Counted from the first letter of the stretch, positions 2,363-61,738 are shown. The stretch: DNA of 64,000 nt from Auanema rhodensis (GCA_964057225.1 OZ059896.1:17732001-17796000); one strand, 5' to 3'. The notes: a model not told the origin generated them from the sequence alone. Numbers and translations: made by a program.

Positions 2363-6829
<4,467 letters not shown>

Positions 6830-39028: not shown

Positions 39029-40168
39029 AACAACAAAACAATAATATTAATAATAATCTGTGTTAACTATATAATATTATAATTTTAAATTAGCTATATA
39101 AGTAATATATAAGACTAAAATATTTTAAATAAACTTCAATATAATAAGAAAGATTTCACTTATATATAACTTAACCAGTTTATATCAACTTCAAAGAAAT
39201 ATTATCAATTGATAAAAGAAATACATAATCGTATATGAATCATGAAACAAGATCTTTTACTCTTCTTCTTTCTCTTCAGAAATCTACTTGATTACAAGAA
39301 ATCTGCATTCTTAACTATAACACAATACGAATAAGAGAACTGAATGTTTTGATTGCGTGAATCGTTAGGATTCTAAGATTTTTTTGTTTTTTTCGTCAAT
39401 TCTCTAAATAAACATTGATAGAATTAAACTACACTCTACACAAACATACACAAAAAGTCTGAACCATTAATCTGAGCTTATATGGTACAAAATGAACAAA
39501 ATGAAGAAACAATATGAAATATGAAATATAAAATTATAATTTATAATATCTATATTATAAATATATTTAAATAGAACATTAAAAATAACCATCAGAATTA
39601 AACAAATCAAATAAATCACATATTTATCTTATTAACTGTATAAACCTATTACCAGTTGAGTTAGCTGCCGTACGAATTATTTCCAACGAGATTTTCAGAA
39701 TGACAGTTAGTCAGTTACCTAATTGTTTAACTGATATAGACGTGCTTCTAACTGCGTAGTTTAATCAGTTTCATCAGCTAATGATTTTGTGCTTGGATAA
39801 AGATCTAGTTATTTGCAACGAACTGCTAGACTAACAACGGGAAATAGCTAATAAACTGGTTCATATAAGCTAGTAAGACTAGTACTATATAAGAAAGAAT
39901 AGCTCTTGTAGAAGACAGTTCACTTACAACTACAATTCTTCTATTATAATCAATCTGATCTTTTAAAATATTTATTCTGTTTAGAGAATCTTCACAAACT
40001 TTACCAAAATTTGTTTTAAATTTTCAAATTTAATCATAATTTTTAGAATAATTTGAATTACATATGAATGATATTACTATTTACTGAACATAATTCTCTC
40101 CATATCTCTCATTTCTTCTTCTCCTCTGCTTGATTTGCAGCACAACTTCTCACCTTATTCTTTTCAGA

Positions 40169-41080
40169 ATGAAGTTTATCCTCATCAGTCTCTGCCTTGT
40201 CGGCTTGTCATCTGCTTTCCTCTTCCCTATGGGAGACAGCGGATGCGGCTGCCAACAGCAATCTTCTTGCGGATGCAGTGCTCCACAACAATCTTCATGC
40301 TGTCCACCACCATGTCCACCACCATGCCCACCACCATGCCCACCACCATGCCCACCACCATGCCCACCACCATGCCCACCACCATGTCCTCCACCATGCC
40401 CACCACCATGCCCACCACCATGCCCACCACCATGCCCACCACCACAACCATCTTGCGGATGTGGAGCTCCACCACCACCACCAAGCTGCGGAGGAGGAGG
40501 TAAAACATAATATAATGAACTATATAATCACATGTATCATTGAACAGGAGGAGGATGCGGAGGAGGATGCGGAGGAGGATGCGGAGGTGGATGCGGAGGA
40601 CGCAAGAAGAGAGAGGCCGTTAACGTCATCACCCACGAGGATGCTTCCAAGTGCAACAACGAAGAACTCCGTCAAGTTCTTCTCAACGTACGTGCCTTAC
40701 TCACTTCATAGTTTTCCGTTTCTCATACCTTGCATTTCCAGAACATGAAGGCTGATGATGAACTCTCTCTCAAGGCCATCAAGCAAGCTCTCGGAGATGT
40801 CCATGACTACATCATCACCTGTAACTCCAAGCCATTCAACTTCATCGCCAACGTTGACGACTACTGCTCCCATGAGAAGGAGGACCTTCACTGCACCATC
40901 CTCCGCATCAACGTCAAGACCGAAGAGAAGGTTGAAGAGGTCAAGAGCACCGCTGAAGTCAACCCAGAAGAGGTCAAGACTGAAGAAGTTGTGAGTTTCA
41001 ATTTTCTTTTTACGAGCAATCATGTATTACGTTTTCAGAAGGAGACCAAGGAGGAAGCTGACCCAGTCAAGAAGAACTAA
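40169..41080 (+). CDS. Ground-like (grl, hedgehog-related) secreted protein, copy 1
   Basis: Signal peptide MKFILISLCLVGLSSA, (CPPP)x12, GGGC repeats, RKKR furin site, ground-like domain CNNEELRQVL...YIITCNSKPFNF...YCSHEKEDLHC, and an acidic tail. Four exons. Confidence 0.88.
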
Positions 41081-41252
41081 GGAAGCTCTCAACTTTCTCA
41101 ATTAGAAACTCATTCGTAGTACAATAAATAATTCATCAATTTCCATTGTTCTTACTATGCTTAGTAGTCGAATCGCAATCTCTAAAATCAAAAAAAAACA
41201 AATGCTGATGCAAATCATCTTTATTCTATAATCGTCTTCTTCATCGTTTGGT

Positions 41253-44200
41253 TTAGAGAAGGAAAGATCTATTTGGGCATGGACAGTATCCAGCGTCTGG
41301 TCCAACTGATCCGTCGGATCCTGGCTCTCCTGATCTGTAGGTGGTTCCTGGCTCTTCTGCAGCTCAAGGTTGATGTTCCCGTTTTGTGTGTCCTGGTTGT
41401 GTAGAAGCACTATTATTTTTGACTCTTTCCGGTTATCCCTTAGGTCCGACTGATCCATAATTTCTTTGAAATTCTCGTGTTCTCGGGGCTCTTGGTCTGT
41501 AGCTGGTTCATGGCTCTATTCCACAGGTCCAACTGCTCCGAGTTTTTCATCAGATTTTGGGGTTATTAGACCTTCTGGTCTGTAGCTGGTTCCTGGCCTA
41601 TTCCACAGGTCCAACTGCTCCGAGTTTTTCATCAGATTCTGGGGTTATTAGACCTTCTGGTCTGTAGCTGGTTCCTGGCCTATTCCATAGGTCCAACTGG
41701 TCCAAGTAAGTTCCTGGCTCTATTCCACAGGTCCAACGGGTTCAAGATTTTCTTGAGATTCTGGGGGTACCGGAAACCCTAGTCTATAGCTGGTTCCTGG
41801 CTCTATTCCACAGGTCCAACTGGTTCAAGTTTTCCTTGAGATTCTGGGGGTACCGGAAACCCTGGTCTGTAGCTGGTACCGGAAACCCTGGTCTGTAGCA
41901 TTCCTGGCTCTATTCCACAGGTCCAACTGGTTCTAGTTTTCCTTGAGATTCTGGGGTTACTGGGGCTTCTGGTCTGTAGCTGGTTCCTGGCTCTATTCCA
42001 CAGGTCCAACTGGTTCAAGTTTTTCTTGAGATTCTGGGGGTACCGGAAACCCTGGTCTGAAGCTGGTTCCTAGCTCTATTCCACAGGTCCAACTGGTTCA
42101 AGTTTTCCTTGAGATTCTGGGGGTACCGGAAACCCTGGTCTGTAGCTGGTACCGGAAACCCTGGTCTGTAGCATTCCTGGCTCTATTCCACAGGTCCAAC
42201 TGGTTCTAGTTTTCCTTGAGATTCTGGGGTTACTGGGGCTTCTGGTCTGTAGCTGGTTCCTGGCTCTATTCCACAGGTCCAACTGGTTCAAGTTTTTCTT
42301 GAGATTCTGGGGGTACCGGAAACCCTGGTCTGTAGCTGGTTCCTGGCTCTATTCCACAGGTCCAACTGGTTCAAGTTTTTCTTGAGATTCTTGGGGTACC
42401 GGAAACCCTAGTCTATAGCTGGTTCCTGGCTCTATTCCACAGGTCCAACTGGTTCAAGTTTTCCTTGAGATTCTGGGGGTACCGGAAACCCTGGTCTGTA
42501 GCTGGTACCGGAAACCGTGGTCTGTAGCATTCCTGGCTCTATTCCACAGGTCCAACTGGTTCTAGTTTTTCATCAGATTCTGGGGTTATTAGACCTTTTG
42601 GTCTGTAGCTGGTTCCTGGCCTATTCCATAGGTCCAACTGCTCCGAGTTTTTCATCAGATTCTGGGGTTATTAGAGCTTCTGGTCTGTAGCTGGTTCCTG
42701 GCTCTATTCCACAGGTCCAACGGGTTCAAGTTTTTCTTGAGATTCTGGGGGTACCGGAAACCCTAGTCTATAGCTGGTTCCTGGCTCTATTCCACAGGTC
42801 CAACTGGTTCAAGTTTTTCTTGAGATTCTGGGGGTACCGGAAACCCTGGTCTGTAGCTGGTACCGGAAACCCTGGTCTGTAACATTCCTGGCTCTATTCC
42901 ACAGGTCCAACTGGTTCTAGTTTTTCTTGAGATTCTGGGGTTACTGGGGCTTCTGGTCTGTAGCTGGTTCCTGGCTCTATTCCACAGGTCCAACTGGTTC
43001 AAGTTTTTTTTGTGATTCTGGGGGTACCGGAAACCCTAGTCTATAGCTGGTTCCTGGCTCTATTCCACAGGTCCAACTGCTCCGAGTTTTTCATCAGATT
43101 CTGGGGTTATTAGACCTTCTGGTCTGTAGCTGGTTCCTGGCCTATTCCATAGGTCCAACTGGTCCAAGTATTCCATCAGATCCTGGGGTTACTGGGGCTA
43201 ATGGTCTGTAGCTGGTTCCTGGCTCTATTACACAGTTCCAACAGATTCAATTTTTCCTTGAGAATCTGGGGGTACCGGAAACCCTAGTCTATAGCTGGTT
43301 CCTGGCTCTATTCCACAGGTCCAACTGGTTCAAGATTTTCTTGAGATTCTGGGGTTATTAGACCTTCTGGTCTGTAGCTGGTTCCTGGCCTATTCCATAG
43401 GTCCAACTGATTCAATTTTTCCTTGAGAATCTGGGGGTACCGGAAACCCTAGTCTATAACTGGTTCCTGGCTCTATTCCACAGGTCCAACGGGTTCAAGA
43501 TTTTCTTGAGATTCTGGGGTTACTGGGGCTTCTGGTCTGTAGCTGGTTCTTGGCTCTATTCCACAGGTCCAACTGGTTCAAGTTTTTCTTGAGATTCTGG
43601 GGGTACCGGAAACCCTAGTCTATAGCTGGTTCCTGGCTCTATTCCACAGGTCCAACTGGTTCTAGTTTTTCTTGAGATTCTGGGGGTACCGGAAACCCTA
43701 GTCTATAGCTGGTTCCTGGCTCTATTCCACAGGTCCAACTGGTTCAAGTTTTTCTTGAGATTCTGGGGGTACCGGAAACCCTAGTCTATAGCTGGTTCCT
43801 GGCTCTATTCCACAGGTCCAACTGGTTCTAGTTTTCCTTGAGATTCTGGGGTTACTGGGGCTTCTGGTCTGTAGCTGGTTCTTGGCTCTATTCCACAGGT
43901 CCAACTGGTTCAAGTTTTTCTTGAGATTCTGGGGGTACCGGAAACCCTAGTCTATAGCTGGTTCCTGGCTCTATTCCACAGGTCCAACTGGTTCTAGTTT
44001 TCCTTGAGATTCTGGGGTTACTGGGGCTTCTGGTCTGTAGCTGGTTCTTGGCTCTATTCCACAGGTCCAACTGGTTCAAGTTTTTCTTGAGATTCTGGGG
44101 GTACCGGAAACCCTAGTCTATAGCTGGTTCCTGGCTCTATTCCACAGGTCCAACTGCTCCGAGTTTTTCATCAGATTCTGGGGTTATTAGACCTTCTGGT

Positions 44201-47200
44201 CTGTAGCTGGTTCCTGGCCTATTCCATAGGTCCAACTGATTCAATTTTTCCTTGAGAATCTGGGGGTACCGGAAACCCTAGTCTATAACTGGTTCCTGGC
44301 TCTATTCCACAGGTCCAACTGCTCCGAGTTTTTCATCAGATTCTGGGGTTATTAGACCTTCTGGTCTGTAGCTGGTTCCTGGCCTATTCCATAGGTCCAA
44401 CTGATTCAATTTTTCCTTGAGAATCTGGGGGTACCGGAAACCCTAGTCTATAACTGGTTCCTGGCTCTATTCCACAGGTCCAACTGCTCCGAGTTTTTCA
44501 TCAGATTCTGGGGTTATTAGACCTTCTGGTCTGTAGCTGGTTCCTGGCCTATTTCATAGGTCCAACTGATTCAATTTTTCCTTGAGATTCTGGGGGTACC
44601 GGAAACCCTAGTCTATAGCTGGTTCCTGGCTCTGTTCCACAGGTTCAACTGCTCCGAGTTTTTCATCAGATTCTGGGGTTATTAGACCTTCTGGTCTGTA
44701 GCTGGTTCCTGGCCTATTCCATAGGTCCAACTGATTCAATTTTTCCTTGAGATTCTGGGGGTACCGGAAACCCTAGTCTATAGCTGGTTCCTGGCTCTAT
44801 TCCACAGGTCCAACTGCTCCGAGTTTTTCATCAGATTCTGGGGTTATTAGACCTTCTGGTCTGTAGCTGGTTCCTGGCCTATTCCATAGGTCCAACTGAT
44901 TCAATTTTTCCTTGAGATTCTGGGGGTACCGGAAACCCTAGTCTATAGCTGGTTCCTGGCTCTGTTCCACAGGTCCAACTGCTCCGAGTTTTTCATCAGA
45001 TTCTGGGGTTATTAGACCTTATGGTCTGTAGCTGGTTCCTGGCCTATTCCATAGGTCCAACTGATTCAATTTTTCCTTGAGAATCTGGGGGTACCGGAAA
45101 CCCTAGTCTATAACTGGTTCCTGGCTCTATTCCACAGGTCCAACGGGTTCAAGATTTTCTTGAGATTCTGGGGGTACCGCAAAACTCTAGTCTATAGCTG
45201 GTTCCTGGCTCTATTCCACAGGTCCAACTGGTTCTAGTATTCCTTGAGATTCTGGGGTTACTGGGGCTTCTGGTCTGTAGCTGGTTCTTGGCTCTATTCC
45301 ACAGGTCCAACTGGTTCAAGTTTTTCTTGAGATTCTGGGGGTACCGGAAACCCTAGTCTATAGCTGGTTCCTGGCTCTATTCCACAGGTCCAACTGCTCC
45401 GAGTTTTTCATCAGATTCTGGGGTTATTAGACCTTCTGGTCTGTAGCAGGTTCCTGGCCTATTCCATAGGTCCAACTGGTTCAAGTTTTCCTTGAGATTC
45501 TGGGGGTACCGGAAACCCTGGTCTGTAGCTGGTACCGGAAACCCTGGTCTGTAGCATTCCTATCTCTATTCCACAGGTCCAACTGGTTCTAGTTTTCCTT
45601 GAGATTCTGGGGTTACTGGGGCTTCTGGTCTGTAGCTGGTTCCTGGCTCTATTCCACAGGTCCAACTGCTCCGAGTTTTTCATCAGATTCTGGGGTTATT
45701 AGACCTTCTGGTCTGTAGCTGGTTCCTGGCCTATTCCATAGGTCCAACTGATTCAATTTTTCCTTGAGATTCTGGGGGTACCGGAAACTCTAGTCTATAG
45801 CTGGTTCCTGGCTCTGTTCCACAGGTCCAACTGCTCCGAGTTTTTCATCAGATTCTGGGGTTATTAGACCTTCTGGTCTGTAGCTGGTTCCTGGCCTATT
45901 CCATAGGTCCAACTGATTCAATTTTTCCTTGAGATTCTGGGGGTACCGGAAACCCTAGTCTATAGCTGGTTTCTGGCTCTGTTCCACAGGTCCAACTGCT
46001 CCGAGTTTTTCATCAGATTCTGGGGTTATTAGACCTTCTGGTCTGTAGCTGGTTCCTGGCCTATTCCATAGGTCCAACTGATTCAATTTTTTCTTGAGAA
46101 TCTGGGGGTACCGGAAACCCTGGTCTGTAGCTGGTACCGGAAACCCTGGTCTGTAGCATTTCTGGCTCTATTCCACAGGTCCAACTGGTTCTAGTTTTCC
46201 TTGAGATTCTGGGGTTACTGGGGCTTCTGGTCTGTAGCTGGTTCCTGGCTCTATTCCACAGGTCCAACTGGTTCAAGTTTTCCTTGAGATTCTGGGGGTA
46301 CCGGAAACCCTAGTCTATAGCTGGTTCCTGGCTCTATTCCACAGGTCCAACTGGTTCAAGTTTTCCTTGAGATTCTGGGGGTACCGGAAACCCTGGTCTG
46401 TAGCTGTTACCGGAAACCCTGGTCTGTAGCTGTTACCAGAAACCCTGGTCTGTAACATTCCTGGCTCTATTCCACAGGTCCAACTGGTTCAAGTTTTCCT
46501 TGAGATTCTGGGGGTACCGGAAACCCTAGTCTATAGCTGGTTCCTGGCTCTATTCCACAGGTCCAACTGGTTCAAGTTTTCCTTGAGATTCTGGGGGTAC
46601 CGGAAACCCTGGTCTGTAGCTGTTACCGGAAACCCTGGTCTGTAGCTGTTACCAGAAACCCTGGTCTGTAACATTCCTGGCTCTATTCCACAGGTCCAAC
46701 TGGTTCTAGTTTTTCTTGAGATTCTGGGGGTACCGGAAACCCTGGTCTGTAGCTGGTTCCTGGATTATTCCATAGGTCCAACTGGTCCGAGTTTTTCATC
46801 AGATTCTGGGGTTATTAGACCTTCTGGTCTGTAGCATTCCTGACTCTATTCCACAGGTCCAACTGGTTCAAGTTTTCCTTGTGATTCTGGGGGTACCGGA
46901 AACCTTGGTCTGTAGCTAGTTCCTGGCTCTATTCCACAGGTCCAACTGGTTCAAGTTTTAGGGTCCATGTTTTTCTTGAAATCCTGGGGTCACAGCGGCT
47001 TCTGGTATTCAGCTGGTTCCGTGATCTCTATCAGCTCCACGCTGTTCGGCACGTTCTGGGTGTCTTGGCTTTTCTGGATGTCCTGGTTCTCCTGGTTGTC
47101 CATCCGATCCTGGGTTTCCGAAAGCTCCTGATAACTCATGTGGTCCAGCGGCTCCTGGAACTCTTGGTGGTCGAGCTGGGCAACGAATGCTTCCTTGGCG

Positions 47201-47501
47201 ACGTGGTTGGCATTTAACTGATGAAGCATATTCTGAGCGTCCTTGAGTTCCGTTTTCTTCTGAAGTTCCGTCCTGTAGTCCTGTCCTAGATGTCCATCTC
47301 CTCTTGGTCCTAAACAAGTATTAGATTGAATTTGCATTCATCTCCGATAAGGAACACACCTAGTGGTCCATCTGGACAAGCAGTTGGTTGAAATCTACAG
47401 TAGTATTGCTCGAATCTCCAAGTAGATCTTTCATTACATCAGAAAGACTTGTGACGGAAGAGCTTCCAGATTCAGTTCCAACAACACGTTCCCAGGTGTC
47501 A
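41253..47501 (-). pseudogene. 5'-truncated cuticle collagen pseudogene interrupted by a satellite array
   Basis: Collinear with the collagen at 49008-49760, including its intron. It lacks the promoter, ATG and TM anchor. There is a 1-nt frameshift near 47435, the RKKR site and a Cys are destroyed, many Gly codons are lost, and 27 bp are deleted. Confidence 0.9.
41436..47030. repeat. ~5.5-kb tandem array of 82-83-bp (and 107-bp variant) monomers derived from collagen coding sequence
   Basis: Consensus-like monomer: GGTCCAACTGGTTCAAGTTTTCCTTGAGATTCTGGGGTTACTGGGGCTTCTGGTCTGTAGCTGGTTCCTGGCTCTATTCCACA. Periodicities are 83, 165/166 and 273 bp. About 65 copies, estimated from length rather than counted. 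Confidence 0.97.
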
Positions 47502-47947
47502 ATAATAAACTGATATAGACGTGCTTCTAACTGCGTAGTTTAATCAGTTTCATCAGCTAATGATTTTGTGCTTGGATAAAGATCTAGTTATTTGCAACGA
47601 ACTGCTAGACTAACAACGGGAAATAGCTAATAAACTGGTTCATATAAGCTAGTAAGACTAGTACTATATAAGAAAGAATAGCTCTTGTAGAAGACAGTTC
47701 ACTTACAACTACAATTCTTCTATTATAATCAATCTGATCTTTTAAAATATTTATTCTGTTTAGAGAATCTTCACAAACTTTACCAAAATTTGTTTTAAAT
47801 TTTCAAATTTAATCATAATTTTTAGAATAATTTGAATTACATATGAATGATATTACTATTTACTGAACATAATTCTCTCCATATCTCTCATTTCTTCTTC
47901 TCCTCTGCTTGATTTGCAGCACAACTTCTCACCTTATTCTTTTCAGA

Positions 47948-48835
47948 ATGAAGTTTATCCTCATCAGTCTCTGCCTTGTCGGCTTGTCATCTGCTTTCCT
48001 CTTCCCTATGGGAGACAGCGGATGCGGCTGCAAGCAACAATCTTCTTGCGGATGCAGTGCTCCACAACAATCTTCATGCTGTCCACCACCATGTCCACCA
48101 CCATGCCCACCACCATGCCCACCTCCATGCCCACCACCATGCCCACCACCATGCCCACCACCATGCCCACCACCATGCCCACCACCATGCCCACCACCAC
48201 AACCATCTTGCGGATGTGGAGCTCCACCACCACCACCAAGCTGCGGAGGAGGAGGTAAAACATAATATAATGAACTATATAATCACATGTATCATTGAAC
48301 AGGAGGAGGATGCGGAGGAGGATGCGGAGGAGGATGCGGAGGTGGATGCGGAGGACGCAAGAAGAGAGAGGCCGCTAACTTCATCACTCACGAGGATGCT
48401 TCCAAGTGCAACAACGAAGAACTCCGTCAAGTTCTTCTCAACGTACGTGCCTTACTCACTTCATAGTTTTCCGTTTCTCATACCTTGCATTTCCAGAACA
48501 TGAAGGCTGATGATGAACTCTCTCTCAAGGCCATCAAGCAAGCTCTCGGAGATGTCCATGACTACATCATCACCTGTAACTCCAAGCCATTCAACTTCAT
48601 CGCCAACGTTGACGACTACTGCTCCCATGAGAAGGAGGACCTTCACTGCACCATCCTTCGCATCAACGCCAAAGCCGAAGAGAAGGTTGAAGAGGTCAAG
48701 AGCACCGCTGAAGTCAACCCAGAAGAGGTCAAGACTGAAGAAGTTGTGAGTTTCAATTTTCTTTTTACGAGCAATCATGTATTACGTTTTCAGAAGGAGA
48801 CCAAGGAGGAAGCTGACCCAGTCAAGAAGAACTAA
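47948..48835 (+). CDS. Ground-like (grl) secreted protein, copy 2
   Basis: Near-identical to 40169-41080 but with (CPPP)x10 and a few clustered substitutions. Confidence 0.88.
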
Positions 48836-49007
48836 GGAAGCTCTCAACTTTCTCAATTAGAAACTCATTCGTAGTACAATAAATAATTCATCAATTTCCA
48901 TTGTTCTTACTATGCTTAGTAGTCGAATCGCAATCTCTAAAATCAAAAAAAAACAAATGCTGATGCAAATCATCTTTATTCTATAATCGTCTTCTTCATC
49001 GTTTGGT

Positions 49008-49906
49008 TTAGAGAAGGAAAGATCTATTTGGGCATGGACAGTATCCAGCGTCTGGTCCAACTGATCCGTCGGATCCTGGCTCTCCTGGTTGACCGTCACG
49101 TCCTGGTCCTCCTGGATATCCTGGAGCTCCTTGGTGTCCTGGTTCTCCAGCAGCACCATCGTTTCCATCTCTTCCTGGTTGTCCGGCTGGCCCAGCTGGC
49201 CCACGTTCTCCTTGAGCTCCTGGGGTTCCTGGGGCTCCTGGTCTGTAGCTGGTTCCTGGTTGTCCAGCAGCTCCTGGCTGTCCGTCACGTCCTGGGTGTC
49301 CTGGCTCTCCTGGGTGTCCTGGTTCTCCTGGTTGTCCATCAGATCCTGGATGTCCAGCGGCTCCTTGAGATCCTGGGTTTCCGGATGGTCCTGGTAATCC
49401 ACGTGGTCCAGCGGCTCCTGGAACTCCTGGTGGTCCAGCTGGGCAACGGATGCATCCTTGGCGACGTGGGTGGTATTCAACTGGTGGAGCATATCCTGGA
49501 CGTCCTGGAGTTCCATCTTCTCCTGGAGTTCCGTCCTGTCCTGGATGTCCATCATCTCCTGGTGGTCCTAAACAAGTATTAGATTGAGTTCACATTGAAC
49601 TGTGATAATGAACGCACCTGGTGGTCCATCTGGACAAGCAGTTGGTTGGAATCCACAGTTGCATTGCTCGAATCCTCCAGTGGATCTCTTCTTACGTCCG
49701 AAAAGCATTGGGACGGAAGAGCTTCCAGATTCAGTTCCAACAACACGTCCCCAGGTGTCATCAGCGACAGCCTTGAAGCGTTCCATATCTTGCTTCATCT
49801 CGTCTTGGAGATTGCTCATGTCATTGACGATCATATGAATGGAGATGAAAGCTCCGACAATGACCAGGATAGTACCGGCAGAAGCCGATCCGATGAAGAA
49901 CGACAT
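49008..49906 (-). CDS. Nematode cuticle collagen (intact)
   Basis: N-terminal TM segment, RKKR furin site, CNC...CPDGPPG, Gly-X-Y blocks, and C-terminal [16 protein letters not shown]. One intron at 49617-49568. Confidence 0.95.
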
Positions 49907-50026
49907 ACTGAAAATTAATTACAGTAAGACTAAAATGAGTATAAAATTAAAACTCTTCAAATATTTGGAAGTAATACCAATGCAAAGGCAATGATTTGAA
50001 TGATTGAAACAATGTTCAAGTCAGTC

Positions 50027-50034
50027 TATATATA
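50027..50034 (-). promoter_or_regulatory. Probable TATA-like box of the collagen gene
   Basis: TATATATAG on the minus strand, about 30 nt upstream of a TCATTC initiator-like site. A short 5'UTR exon and an intron ending TTTTCAG precede the ATG. Confidence 0.4.
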
Positions 50035-50264
50035 CCAGTACGTAGTAACCTGTTCCACCTGAAACATTTCTACTTTTTCATTCAAAATCTTCATTTTTCT
50101 TTTTTAATATCATGAAGTGAAACCTCGAGAGTATCACTATAGTTGATTCTTTTTTCTTTTTCAAGTAATTCGTAATGAGACCAATACTTTTAGTTTTTTT
50201 TTGTTTCTTCTAAATAAGTTACGATTCTTATTGAGGATTCCAATACATAGACTCCAGTGGAAAA

Positions 50265-50269
50265 GAGAA

Positions 50270-50324
<55 letters not shown>
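50265..50324. repeat. (AG)n microsatellite
   Basis: Direct observation. Confidence 0.95.
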
Positions 50325-53034: not shown

Positions 53035-53775
53035 GTGTGTGTATATATACGTAAATGAAATATGAGTAGTTAAAGTACAAAATATATTCTTAAATTGAAT
53101 CTTTCCTTTTTATTCAAAAACAATGCCATGATACAGCTGGATAATGCATTGATATATAGGATGGATATATATATATAATATTATTAATATATAATACATA
53201 TAGTTAGTGTATATAGGTATACTATATTTAGACTATTATTTTAGATACACGAATGTCTATACTATATGATGATGATGGTAGGTAGTACGGCACTGACGAG
53301 GACGGCCACTACTACAGACAGCATCGACGTTGTCTGAGGAGAGGACAATATTCAATTACGATACACTTAAATGAATGGTTCTCTCTCTATTTCTTTTTTT
53401 TTCTGTTTTTCTCTCTCTCTCCATCTTTCTCTCTCTATCTATCTACCTCTCTCTTTTTCTCTCTATGCCGCTCAATCAGAATTGCAAACTGCAGCACTGA
53501 ACTTATGAATAATTTGAGATTTTGACGATATGCTTTCAATAGATGTCGTAATAGTCTGTTACCGTTTTGGAGTGTTTTCAGGTTGAAATGTAAAGTTAAT
53601 AGAAAGTCTAGAATAATAAACAGAAAGTCAAAATTCTGTGGAAAGTAGTATTTGGAATGGCATAATCAAGGTCCTCATATTATTATTTTTGTTCTGAGAT
53701 TTTAATATATTTTGTAGGATATATAGAAATAGTCATGATAATATATTGCACACGAGACTAAGAAACTTCAATACA

Positions 53776-53905
<130 letters not shown>

Positions 53906-58029: not shown

Positions 58030-58756
58030 AAAGAACATTTTGAAACATTTATTAAGAAGATTAGAAAAAATATCAAAAAATGTCTGATTATTTTTTTTCA
58101 TATTTTCTTGTTTAGAATGAAAACTTACCATCATATCCTTGTATACGTGGATATTATTCTCGAAGTTACCAGAAATCCAGAGTAAGCTCGAATGTGACAC
58201 TACAAGCTCTCAGCAGATTAACAAAATTCATCTAATTTTCTACAGTTTTTATTTATTTGAAAGATATAATCAAATGTTTCATTAAATGTATAATTTATTT
58301 TTGGAAAATAAATTATTAAATATACAAATATGAATATTATGTATTCAAGGGAAGATACTTGGATGTGTGCAACGGAAAATTGTGAAAGAAATTATCAGTT
58401 TAATGATATTTTTTTCAAAATTTGTTCTTTTATACCTTTATATTCTCTCTCTCTCTCTCTGAAACTCTTTTTTTATCTTTCTCTTCAATTTCATCGTGAT
58501 GTAATTGCTCAAGCGGATTATCATCCATTTTTAGTTTTGCTTTTTTTCTTGTTGTAGTGACCAGATGCAAGAATACGAAAAGAAAAAAAAAGATTTGTTG
58601 ATGTAACTATCTGTACTACTATGTTGTTTTCTTTGATTTCAATCAAGCATTTGTAATTAAGAATAGAAGGTAATATCATAATATTTAGATGAATTTTTAT
58701 CAGAAAAAGAATTTATTTCTAGTTTACAATGACACAAAAAACAATTATTTTCTGAA

Positions 58757-59746
58757 TTATTGCATGAAGCGGACAGACTCAGTACGAGCTGGGCATGGAC
58801 AATATCCAGCATCTGGTCCAATCTCTCCGTCAAGTCCTGGAGTGGCTGGTTGACCGTCGGATCCTGGAAGACCGTCAGTTCCTGGAAGACCGGCAGGTCC
58901 TGGAGTTCCTGTCTCTCCGTCTTGTCCGTCAAGTCCATCCTTTCCGGCTTCTCCGGCTGGTCCACGTGGTCCTGGAACTCCTGGTCTTCCTGGCTTGCCC
59001 TCGGTGTATTCGACTCCTGGCTCTCCAGCATCTCCCATTGGTCCTGGGCGTCCTGACATTCCTGGTCTTCCGTCAAGTCCTGGCTCTCCAGCATCTCCGT
59101 CGAGTCCTGGAACTCCTGGCTCTCCAGCGGCTCCTGGGATTCCGTCTTCTCCGGCATCTCCGACTGGTCCAACTGGTCCTGGTGGTCCTGGAGGTCCAGC
59201 TGGGCAGACAATGCAAGCCTTTGAGACCTAAAACGCTTGATAAAGAAAATGTATTGGTAAATGAACAAACATCATCTCCGAAGACAATCTGGTTTCCGCT
59301 GATTCCTTCACTACCTGGCTCTCCATCGAGTCCTGGAGCTCCTGGGGTTCCGTCATCTCCTGGAGGTCCTGGTGGTCCAGCTGGACATCCGTGAGATTGA
59401 GCTCCACAGTTGCATTGGTTGCTACTACGCTTGTTTCTGCCTAAAGCATTATTGTGATTATTATGAATCGCAACAGGAGAATACTGTACCGATTAAGGTG
59501 TTGAAGTTGAATTGCTCAGATGGGCGAGACTTGACAACAACCTCTCTCCAAGCAACATCGGCAACAGTCTAGAAGAAATAAGATTTAAAAGTATTGAAAG
59601 TGAAAGAATATTACCTTGAAATCAGACATACGATCCATGACATCATCATACATGTTGTTGATATCAACAACAATGCGTCCGATGCTAATGAAAGCACCGA
59701 AAACGATGACAAGAGTAGCAGCAGAAGCGATAGTACTGAAGCCCAT
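58757..59746 (-). CDS. Nematode cuticle collagen (intact, 4 exons)
   Basis: MGFSTIASAATLVIVFGAFISIG TM segment, RNKR furin site, QCNCGAQSHGCPAGPPG, CIVCPAGPPG, Gly-X-Y blocks, [20 protein letters not shown]. Confidence 0.95.
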
Positions 59747-61302: not shown

Positions 61303-61361
<59 letters not shown>

Positions 61362-61738
61362 TCTCTCTCGTCCCTCACATCTCTCTCTCTATCCCGTTCT
61401 ATTTCAAATATTCTTTCTTGAAAATGCTTGCTTTCAGATGTGCAAGAAAGTAGAAGCTGGAAAAAAGAAAGGAAAGGCTGTACTTGCTTCGTGTGATGTT
61501 GGTATTAACTATCTTCTGCAACAAGTCAATCGAAAGTACATTGACAACATCTGTATGGCTGTTAAGGATGTAATATTATTTTTTAACCATAAGATCATAA
61601 ATGGACAATCATTTATCTCATTTTCAGACAGCTAGTGCAAAAGAATTTGGATGTGTATTGAAACATGGAACACCAATTATAGATTTAAATACTTATAACT
61701 GTGCTTCATCGAAAGCTAATATCTTTGGGAAAAAGTAA
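60740..61738 (+). CDS. Uncharacterised secreted protein (~202 aa, 10 Cys in mature part, 6 exons)
   Basis: Six exons join in phase across canonical GT-AG introns: MRNRAISFFFIYLISTTQC-QMKNRDAFVKRV...FLTCVCPSVHECGS...DILNCLS...FEGCLL...MCKKVEAG...IDNICMAVKD-TASAKEFGCVLKHG...YNCASSKANIFGKK*. Confidence 0.75.

Follow-up and report, generated by a model that had tools for sequence, protein, structure and literature searches.

The 64,000-nucleotide stretch of Auanema rhodensis DNA analyzed here (OZ059896.1, 17732001 to 17796000; the window, with positions counted from its first letter) contains an intact cuticle collagen gene at 49008 to 49906 on the minus strand, a dead duplicate of most of that gene, and, within the duplicate, a tandem array of short units at 41520 to 46959. 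The array very likely belongs to this locus alone and arose in place inside the dead cuticle-collagen duplicate, most likely without having any function. A sequence-only reading of the window had put ancestor gene, pseudogene, and new array side by side, an arrangement that was borne out by self-comparison and by direct reading.

The intact parent collagen was recognized by reading of the sequence and by matches to the Pfam families Col_cuticle_N and Collagen. It comprises exon 1 (49618 to 49906), a 50-nt intron (49568 to 49617), and exon 2 (49008 to 49567) and encodes 282 amino acids, with a cuticle N-terminal domain (PF01484; E = 7.7e-14, 52 bits versus a cutoff of 23.5) and triple-helix repeats (PF01391; E = 1.4e-24) whose Gly-X-Y frame is uninterrupted by stops. 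In a protein search for an ortholog of exon 2, distant matches only were obtained, at 51% identity or less (Caenorhabditis bovis, Pristionchus, and Meloidogyne). RNA evidence, here and below, consists of the contigs of one small run (X12) on 44000 to 49950. None of these contigs lay on exon 1 of the parent (49572 to 49950), the expression of which may be stage-specific, and the contigs on its Gly-X-Y part showed joints and loose ends of the kind that other collagens produce.

Self-comparison by blastn delimited a tandem duplication. Copy 1 (39729 to 47501) holds a copy of a Ground-like-domain gene, the collagen pseudogene, and the array within it; copy 2 (47508 to 49760; 2.25 kb) holds the other copy of the Ground-like gene along with the greater part of the intact collagen. 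On direct reading of the junction, collagen homology stops at 47501 and is followed by 6 filler bases, after which copy 2 starts at 47508. Copy 2 continues into unique sequence that contains the first 146 coding bases of the collagen and the region upstream of them. Copy 1 stops at the position equivalent to 49760, and the pseudogene thus has no promoter, start codon, or membrane-anchor region and is without the initial 146 nt of the parental coding sequence. Because the duplication removed both the promoter and these 146 coding nucleotides, the collagen copy was dead from birth; the earlier claim of a dead collagen copy beside an intact gene stands, corrected in this respect. The right flank of the pseudogene (46960 to 47501, minus strand) is collinear with 49196 to 49760 at 75 to 87% identity; it carries an intron relic and has been disrupted by stops and frameshifts as well as by a 27-bp deletion and an insertion of 8 bp. 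As the intron relic (approximately 47313 to 47362) is kept and aligns to the parental intron at 49568 to 49617, the pseudogene is of the unprocessed (duplicated) kind: intron and flanks are retained, and the frame is disabled by 5' truncation, stops, frameshifts, and the array itself. At the other end, the 3' end of the pseudogene (41253 to 41328, minus strand), comprising the stop codon and the last 25 codons, is identical to 49008 to 49083.

Across 41493 to 46959, Tandem Repeats Finder reported periods of 83, 165, 107, 190, and 216. When the array was cut at a conserved 14-mer, 63 head-to-tail units were obtained between 41520 and 46933 (36 of 83 bp, 16 of 82 bp, six of 107 bp, two of 133 bp, and one each of 84, 81, and 40 bp), followed by a 27-nt partial unit; including the edge relics described below, the array amounts to approximately 65 copies and 5.5 kb. 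Both analyses confirmed the array that had been noticed at 41436 to 47030. The units fall into four types, namely, type A (17 plain units and 7 with one or two additional inner copies of 24 to 26 bp), type B (n = 10), type C (n = 17; 82 bp), and type D (n = 11). The inner duplications, which give rise to the 107- and 133-bp units, are nested and are bounded by GGTACC and GGTTCC, which provide microhomology. Types C and D alternate in 165-bp dimers. Since neighboring C-D dimers are 97.6 to 100% identical and the four types are 6 to 23% apart, the array combines old diversification with recent amplification of blocks. No comparable repeat was found in the remainder of the 64-kb window. The array had been called a satellite, and its structure agrees with that name in that it consists of head-to-tail monomers with homogenization and higher-order units; long arrays, many loci, and a high genomic copy number are lacking, however, and the term is generous for one locus of 5.5 kb.

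The origin of the unit could be read directly from the parent. By blastn, 41920 to 41990 matched 49189 to 49259 without gaps (60/71 identical; E = 1e-16), and 10 of the 11 differences between unit and parent were G/C to A/T, so that both figures given by the sequence-only reading were reproduced; 49189 to 49259 was also the sole match to the unit in the window outside the array. The amplified parental segment (49182 to 49262, minus strand) measures 81 nt, or 27 codons, spans the Gly-X-Y interruption GTSYRPG (minus strand), and today has a 13-nt direct repeat around it. Over the whole unit, identity to the parent was 81% for type B and 69 to 72% for the other types, and type B is therefore considered the closest to the founder.

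The edges of the array also consist of collagen sequence. At the right edge, the 27-nt partial unit is followed, from 46960 onward, by an old copy of the amplified segment, with an identity of 70% to the parent and of 61 to 74% to the unit types, and from there the flank runs collinearly into 49196 to 49760. At the left edge, a degenerate copy (41397 to 41519, minus strand) matches 49143 to 49265 at 67% and was never homogenized with the array. It is preceded by an old collagen relic (41329 to 41396, minus strand) that matches 49237 to 49304 at 75% without gaps and out of collinear order; this is its best gapless placement (51/68), the runner-up reaching 39/68 (57%), and it was also a second match by blastn. 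Relative to the next block the relic makes a step back of 162 nt, that is, 2 × 81, which fits its being the trace of an earlier, double-length duplication of 162 nt of which the end alone may have survived. Both edges had been described as grading into collagen sequence collinear with the gene. This holds for the right edge and fails for the left, which steps back by 162 nt and abuts a recently homogenized tract at 41329. The central claim, that the array is an in-place amplification of one Gly-X-Y segment and no insertion, was upheld, as the unit is homologous to its own site and both flanks are collagen.

The base changes in the units match those in the flanking pseudogene. Of 89 parent-to-pseudogene changes in the right flank, 57 were G/C to A/T versus 16 that were A/T to G/C, and the equilibrium GC content predicted from the per-site rates is 26%. 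GC content is 20 to 30% in local noncoding DNA, 59% in the parent exon, and 48% in the array. Because the spectrum of the flanking pseudogene predicts the GC content of local noncoding DNA, the excess of G/C to A/T changes calls for no special mutator, and the sequence is relaxing toward the base composition of the genome.

A third cuticle collagen paralog is located at approximately 58600 to 59700 on the minus strand; it shares approximately 66% identity with the parent across its Gly-X-Y part and has the interruption GVEYTEGKPG where the parent has GTSYRPG. At 49194 to 49203 and 49260 to 49263 the parent has GGG glycine codons and CAA, and the paralog and the pseudogene copies share another state. 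At these positions, where paralog and pseudogene agree against the parent, it is the parent that changed after the duplication.

The 13-nt direct repeat that brackets the amplified segment in the parent, GGACAACCAGGAA on the minus strand, is present in two copies 81 nt apart that start at 49265 and 49184 (minus strand). Slippage and unequal exchange use substrates of this kind. At 49260 to 49263, CTCT stands in the third collagen and in every pseudogene copy, versus TTGT in the parent, and the ancestral repeat was therefore probably a match of 11/13. Given this difference, the perfect repeat is taken to mark only the likely site of the first duplication and not its exact substrate. An insertion of two bases (CTCTAT) common to the right flank and the units was likewise considered and rejected, since gapless alignment of the flank revealed substitutions and no insertion. 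Four substitutions are common to the left-edge copy, the right-edge copy, and all array types, which suggests decay before amplification. The paralog polarized three of the four, of which one (C to A) was derived in the pseudogene lineage and two looked like changes in the parent; the numbers are small, and some decay of the pseudogene probably preceded the first duplication of the unit.

From these observations we infer the following order of events, including slippage as the mechanism. A 2.25-kb tandem duplication of the Ground-like gene and most of the convergent collagen would have left a collagen copy without a promoter and without its first 49 codons, and this copy would have decayed under the usual G/C to A/T mutation bias of the genome. 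The Gly-X-Y code offers short direct repeats at intervals of 9 nt, and misaligned pairing between them would then have duplicated a piece of approximately 162 nt first and the unit of approximately 81 to 83 nt thereafter. Replication slippage and unequal sister-chromatid exchange could have raised the number to approximately 65 copies, accompanied by divergence into four types, nested duplications of 24 to 26 bp, and reamplification of blocks, including the 165-bp dimers, which are 94 to 100% alike. A very recent homogenization of 1.6 kb on the side of the Ground-like gene with its partner copy would have been the last step.

The array encodes no protein. Stops are found in all six frames, the longest stop-free run being 90 codons, and three copies of the 165-bp dimer contain 6 to 12 stops in each frame; because all frames are interrupted by stops, the array is noncoding. 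Its noncoding nature had been deduced from a unit length that is not a multiple of 3. The conclusion is retained on the strength of the stops, but the length argument is insufficient because 82 + 83 = 165, which is 55 codons, so that the dimer stays in frame. RNA contig depth was zero over 44000 to 46984, which is part of the array, and over 47184 to 47780. A search of 39500 to 50200 with Rfam yielded no known RNA families, and six other long open reading frames of the window yielded no match in Pfam.

The strongest of the alternatives, though in our view an unlikely one, is that the array is a functional noncoding element, which may supply small RNAs matching the collagen family, seed heterochromatin, or take part in programmed DNA elimination as its target or seed. 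These roles, raised as speculation in the sequence-only reading, gained no support. The array is homogeneous in blocks, with adjacent dimers 97.6 to 100% alike, which would suit such a role, but unequal exchange yields block homogeneity without selection. Also in its favor, massive elimination of tandem repeats has been described in Auanema in a preprint (10.64898/2026.08.27.747507), according to which multi-megabase repeat blocks amounting to 61% of the germline genome are removed in Auanema rhodense; their units measure 167 to 504 nt, and the chromosomes break at a 29-nt palindrome. The array, in contrast, measures 5.5 kb, has an 83-bp unit, lies in a gene region, and does not fit that pattern, the known elimination removing multi-megabase blocks by breakage and not small internal arrays. 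The DNA contigs likewise gave no sign of selective loss relative to the local flanks, as the array was as deep per copy as these. Furthermore, zero RNA contig depth over 44000 to 46984 was observed beside a heavily covered neighbor. The narrower proposal that the array is not inert, giving rise to putative antisense-to-collagen small RNAs in the germline or being the early seed of a repeat that can become a germline-restricted satellite in a genome that rids its somatic cells of most tandem repeats, is somewhat more doubtful still; were the early-seed case true, the locus would represent a datable first step toward a germline-restricted satellite.

Whether the length or the internal order of the array might be an artefact of assembly, with a collapsed or inflated repeat, was assessed with contigs from three DNA runs (X2, X7, and X8), which come from three studies and bear three coded organism labels; X1, a possible source of the assembly, was not included. 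At the right junction, contigs of the three runs extended from 46930/46931 to 47254, 47429, and 47482 with 0 differences. The duplication junction was bridged by one contig (X8; 47460 to 47537), and contigs of X7 and X8 broke at 47508, where the depth was approximately twice that of single-copy sequence. We rejected the idea that the runs represent sister taxa, as the absence of differences at the junction indicates one strain, or strains that are almost identical, and makes the runs uninformative on the age of the array. As a rough measure of copy number, the mean depth of a contig was divided by the depth of the single-copy flank and set against 31-mer multiplicity in the window. For pieces of the array, the depth ratio was 10.6 versus a multiplicity of 11.1 at 45639 to 45769 (X7), 14.1 versus 12.1 at 46006 to 46080 (X8), 5.9 versus 3.2 at 46093 to 46188 (X8), and 2.2 versus 4.7 at 45117 to 45230 (X8); for the duplicated 1.6 kb, it was 1.9 to 2.3 (X2, X7, and X8) versus 1.9. 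As the depth ratios fit this locus alone, the assembled copy number is about right, and no large reservoir elsewhere is indicated. An artefact is thus improbable, even though short-read contigs are too short to span the array and two of the four array ratios are off the assembly by approximately twofold: the other two are within approximately 15% of the assembled multiplicities, the right and duplication junctions were recovered in runs other than X1, and the unit types follow an ordered, nonrandom pattern.

There is very little to recommend a model in which the array is a plus-strand gene built of tandem modules, each comprising a 36-nt exon plus an intron of 47 nt that has CCACAG at its end, although four features are in keeping with it. 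The AG is kept in 63/63 units, the 36-nt piece has one plus-strand frame that is free of stops in every unit, the length changes of 1 bp and of 24 to 26 bp are confined to the putative intron, and the putative exon is the less variable part (mean minor-allele fraction, 0.08 versus 0.15). The open frame, however, is inherited from a stop-free antisense frame of the parent (a 184-amino-acid plus-strand open reading frame at 49028 to 49582). The candidate donors, GTACCG, GTTACT, and GTTATT, are poor fits to the usual splice donor consensus, and in types B and C the donor moves by 1 nt to give 35-nt exons, so that C-D dimers, joining 35- and 36-nt exons, would lose the frame. Neither RNA contigs nor joints were seen over 44000 to 46984 in X12. 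An equally remote alternative, insertion of a preexisting satellite into the pseudogene with only a secondary likeness to collagen, has no observation in its favor and is opposed by the homology of the unit to the precise gene segment where the array sits, by flanks that both continue in register into the source segment, by edge copies that are old, unhomogenized versions of that segment, by depth ratios that allow no large reservoir elsewhere, and by the presence of no further copies within the window.

Several points weigh against an origin in place without function, the reading that we prefer. The perfect 13-nt repeat of the parent may be younger than the duplication, and the unit measures 83 nt versus a repeat spacing of 81 nt, two bases more. 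The argument on copy number draws on the mean depths of only four array contigs, a rough measure, and the contig checks of the assembly cover two junctions only, the right one and that of the duplication. A single RNA run over 44000 to 49950 would miss small RNAs and stage-specific transcripts, and functionlessness is not demonstrable from sequence, the lack of function being inferred.

Tandem repeats derived from a protein-coding gene are represented by Stellate and Su(Ste) of Drosophila, which are transcribed, yield Piwi-interacting RNAs, and are the model behind the idea of small RNAs matching a parent gene. The unit of the collagen array, unlike these, is a short internal fragment and not gene-sized, and no RNA was seen in X12 over the part of the array covered (44000 to 46984). 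Arrays confined to one locus and grown in place are common in rhabditid nematodes: in two species of Caenorhabditis, unique satellites make up approximately 77% of satellites, and some of them come from an isolated proto-repeat (Subirana and Messeguer 2017, PMC5748669). Like these rhabditid unique satellites, the array occupies a single locus, has a unit longer than 10 nt, and originated in place from a sequence that the ancestor had in one copy (PMC5748669); unlike them, it has as its source a coding segment of a pseudogene, with the intact parent 2 kb away. Because the source is identified and the intact parent lies so near, one can read which segment founded the array, what relics lie at its edges, and in what order events took place. 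In the model of satellite birth by Ruiz-Ruano et al., as outlined by Garrido-Ramos (2017, PMC5615363), de novo duplication by slippage at a single locus is followed by local amplification, by higher-order repeats, and then by spread. The collagen array, duplicated and amplified at one locus, resembles the first step of the model as given there (PMC5615363); it differs from the second step in that there is no sign of spread, and its 5.5 kb and approximately 65 copies fall far short of what is seen in a classical satellite. Literature searches for a previous report of a collagen-derived tandem array found none.

The array is a clean and instructive example of a known and ordinary process by which tandem repeats originate. 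Within 10 kb, the locus brings together the intact parent, the dead copy, unhomogenized edge copies, four unit types, and the youngest dimers, and the source of a tandem repeat is rarely so directly readable. The existing picture of satellite origin is unchanged by it, and a function is not indicated. The locus is suited to teaching and to modeling, both of the way in which Gly-X-Y periodicity feeds slippage and of the tempo of array growth versus the decay of the pseudogene.

To the left of the pseudogene lies the recently homogenized tract (39729 to 41328), which is approximately 99.4% identical to 47508 to 49083 (96 to 100% in bins of 100 nt), with 100% identity over long noncoding stretches. 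It contains copy 1 of the Ground-like gene together with the final 76 coding nucleotides of the collagen. At 41329/49084, identity falls abruptly to 58 to 70%, and it is 75 to 87% in the right flank; the tract terminates at a common CTCCTGGT microhomology. Identity is thus bimodal. The older, diverged part dates the duplication, and for the nearly identical 1.6 kb the best explanation is either gene conversion in recent times or a further duplication.

Copy 2 of the Ground-like-domain gene (47948 to 48835, plus strand) gave a partial match to PF04155 in Pfam, below the curated cutoff, and copy 1 (approximately 40169 to 41080, plus strand) is its duplicate. In X12, the Ground-like gene had very deep contigs, with GT..AG joints at 48252>48301 and 48442>48497, and both copies appear to be very highly expressed, as the RNA contigs carry variants of each. 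The product has a signal peptide, low-complexity runs of (CPPP)n and (GGGC)n, and the partial Ground-like domain, and the two gene copies differ by 24 bp in the (CPPP)n run. Elsewhere in the window, long (TC)n/(AG)n microsatellites recur at 3170 to 3398, 50264 to 50324, 53775 to 53905, and approximately 61304 to 61368.

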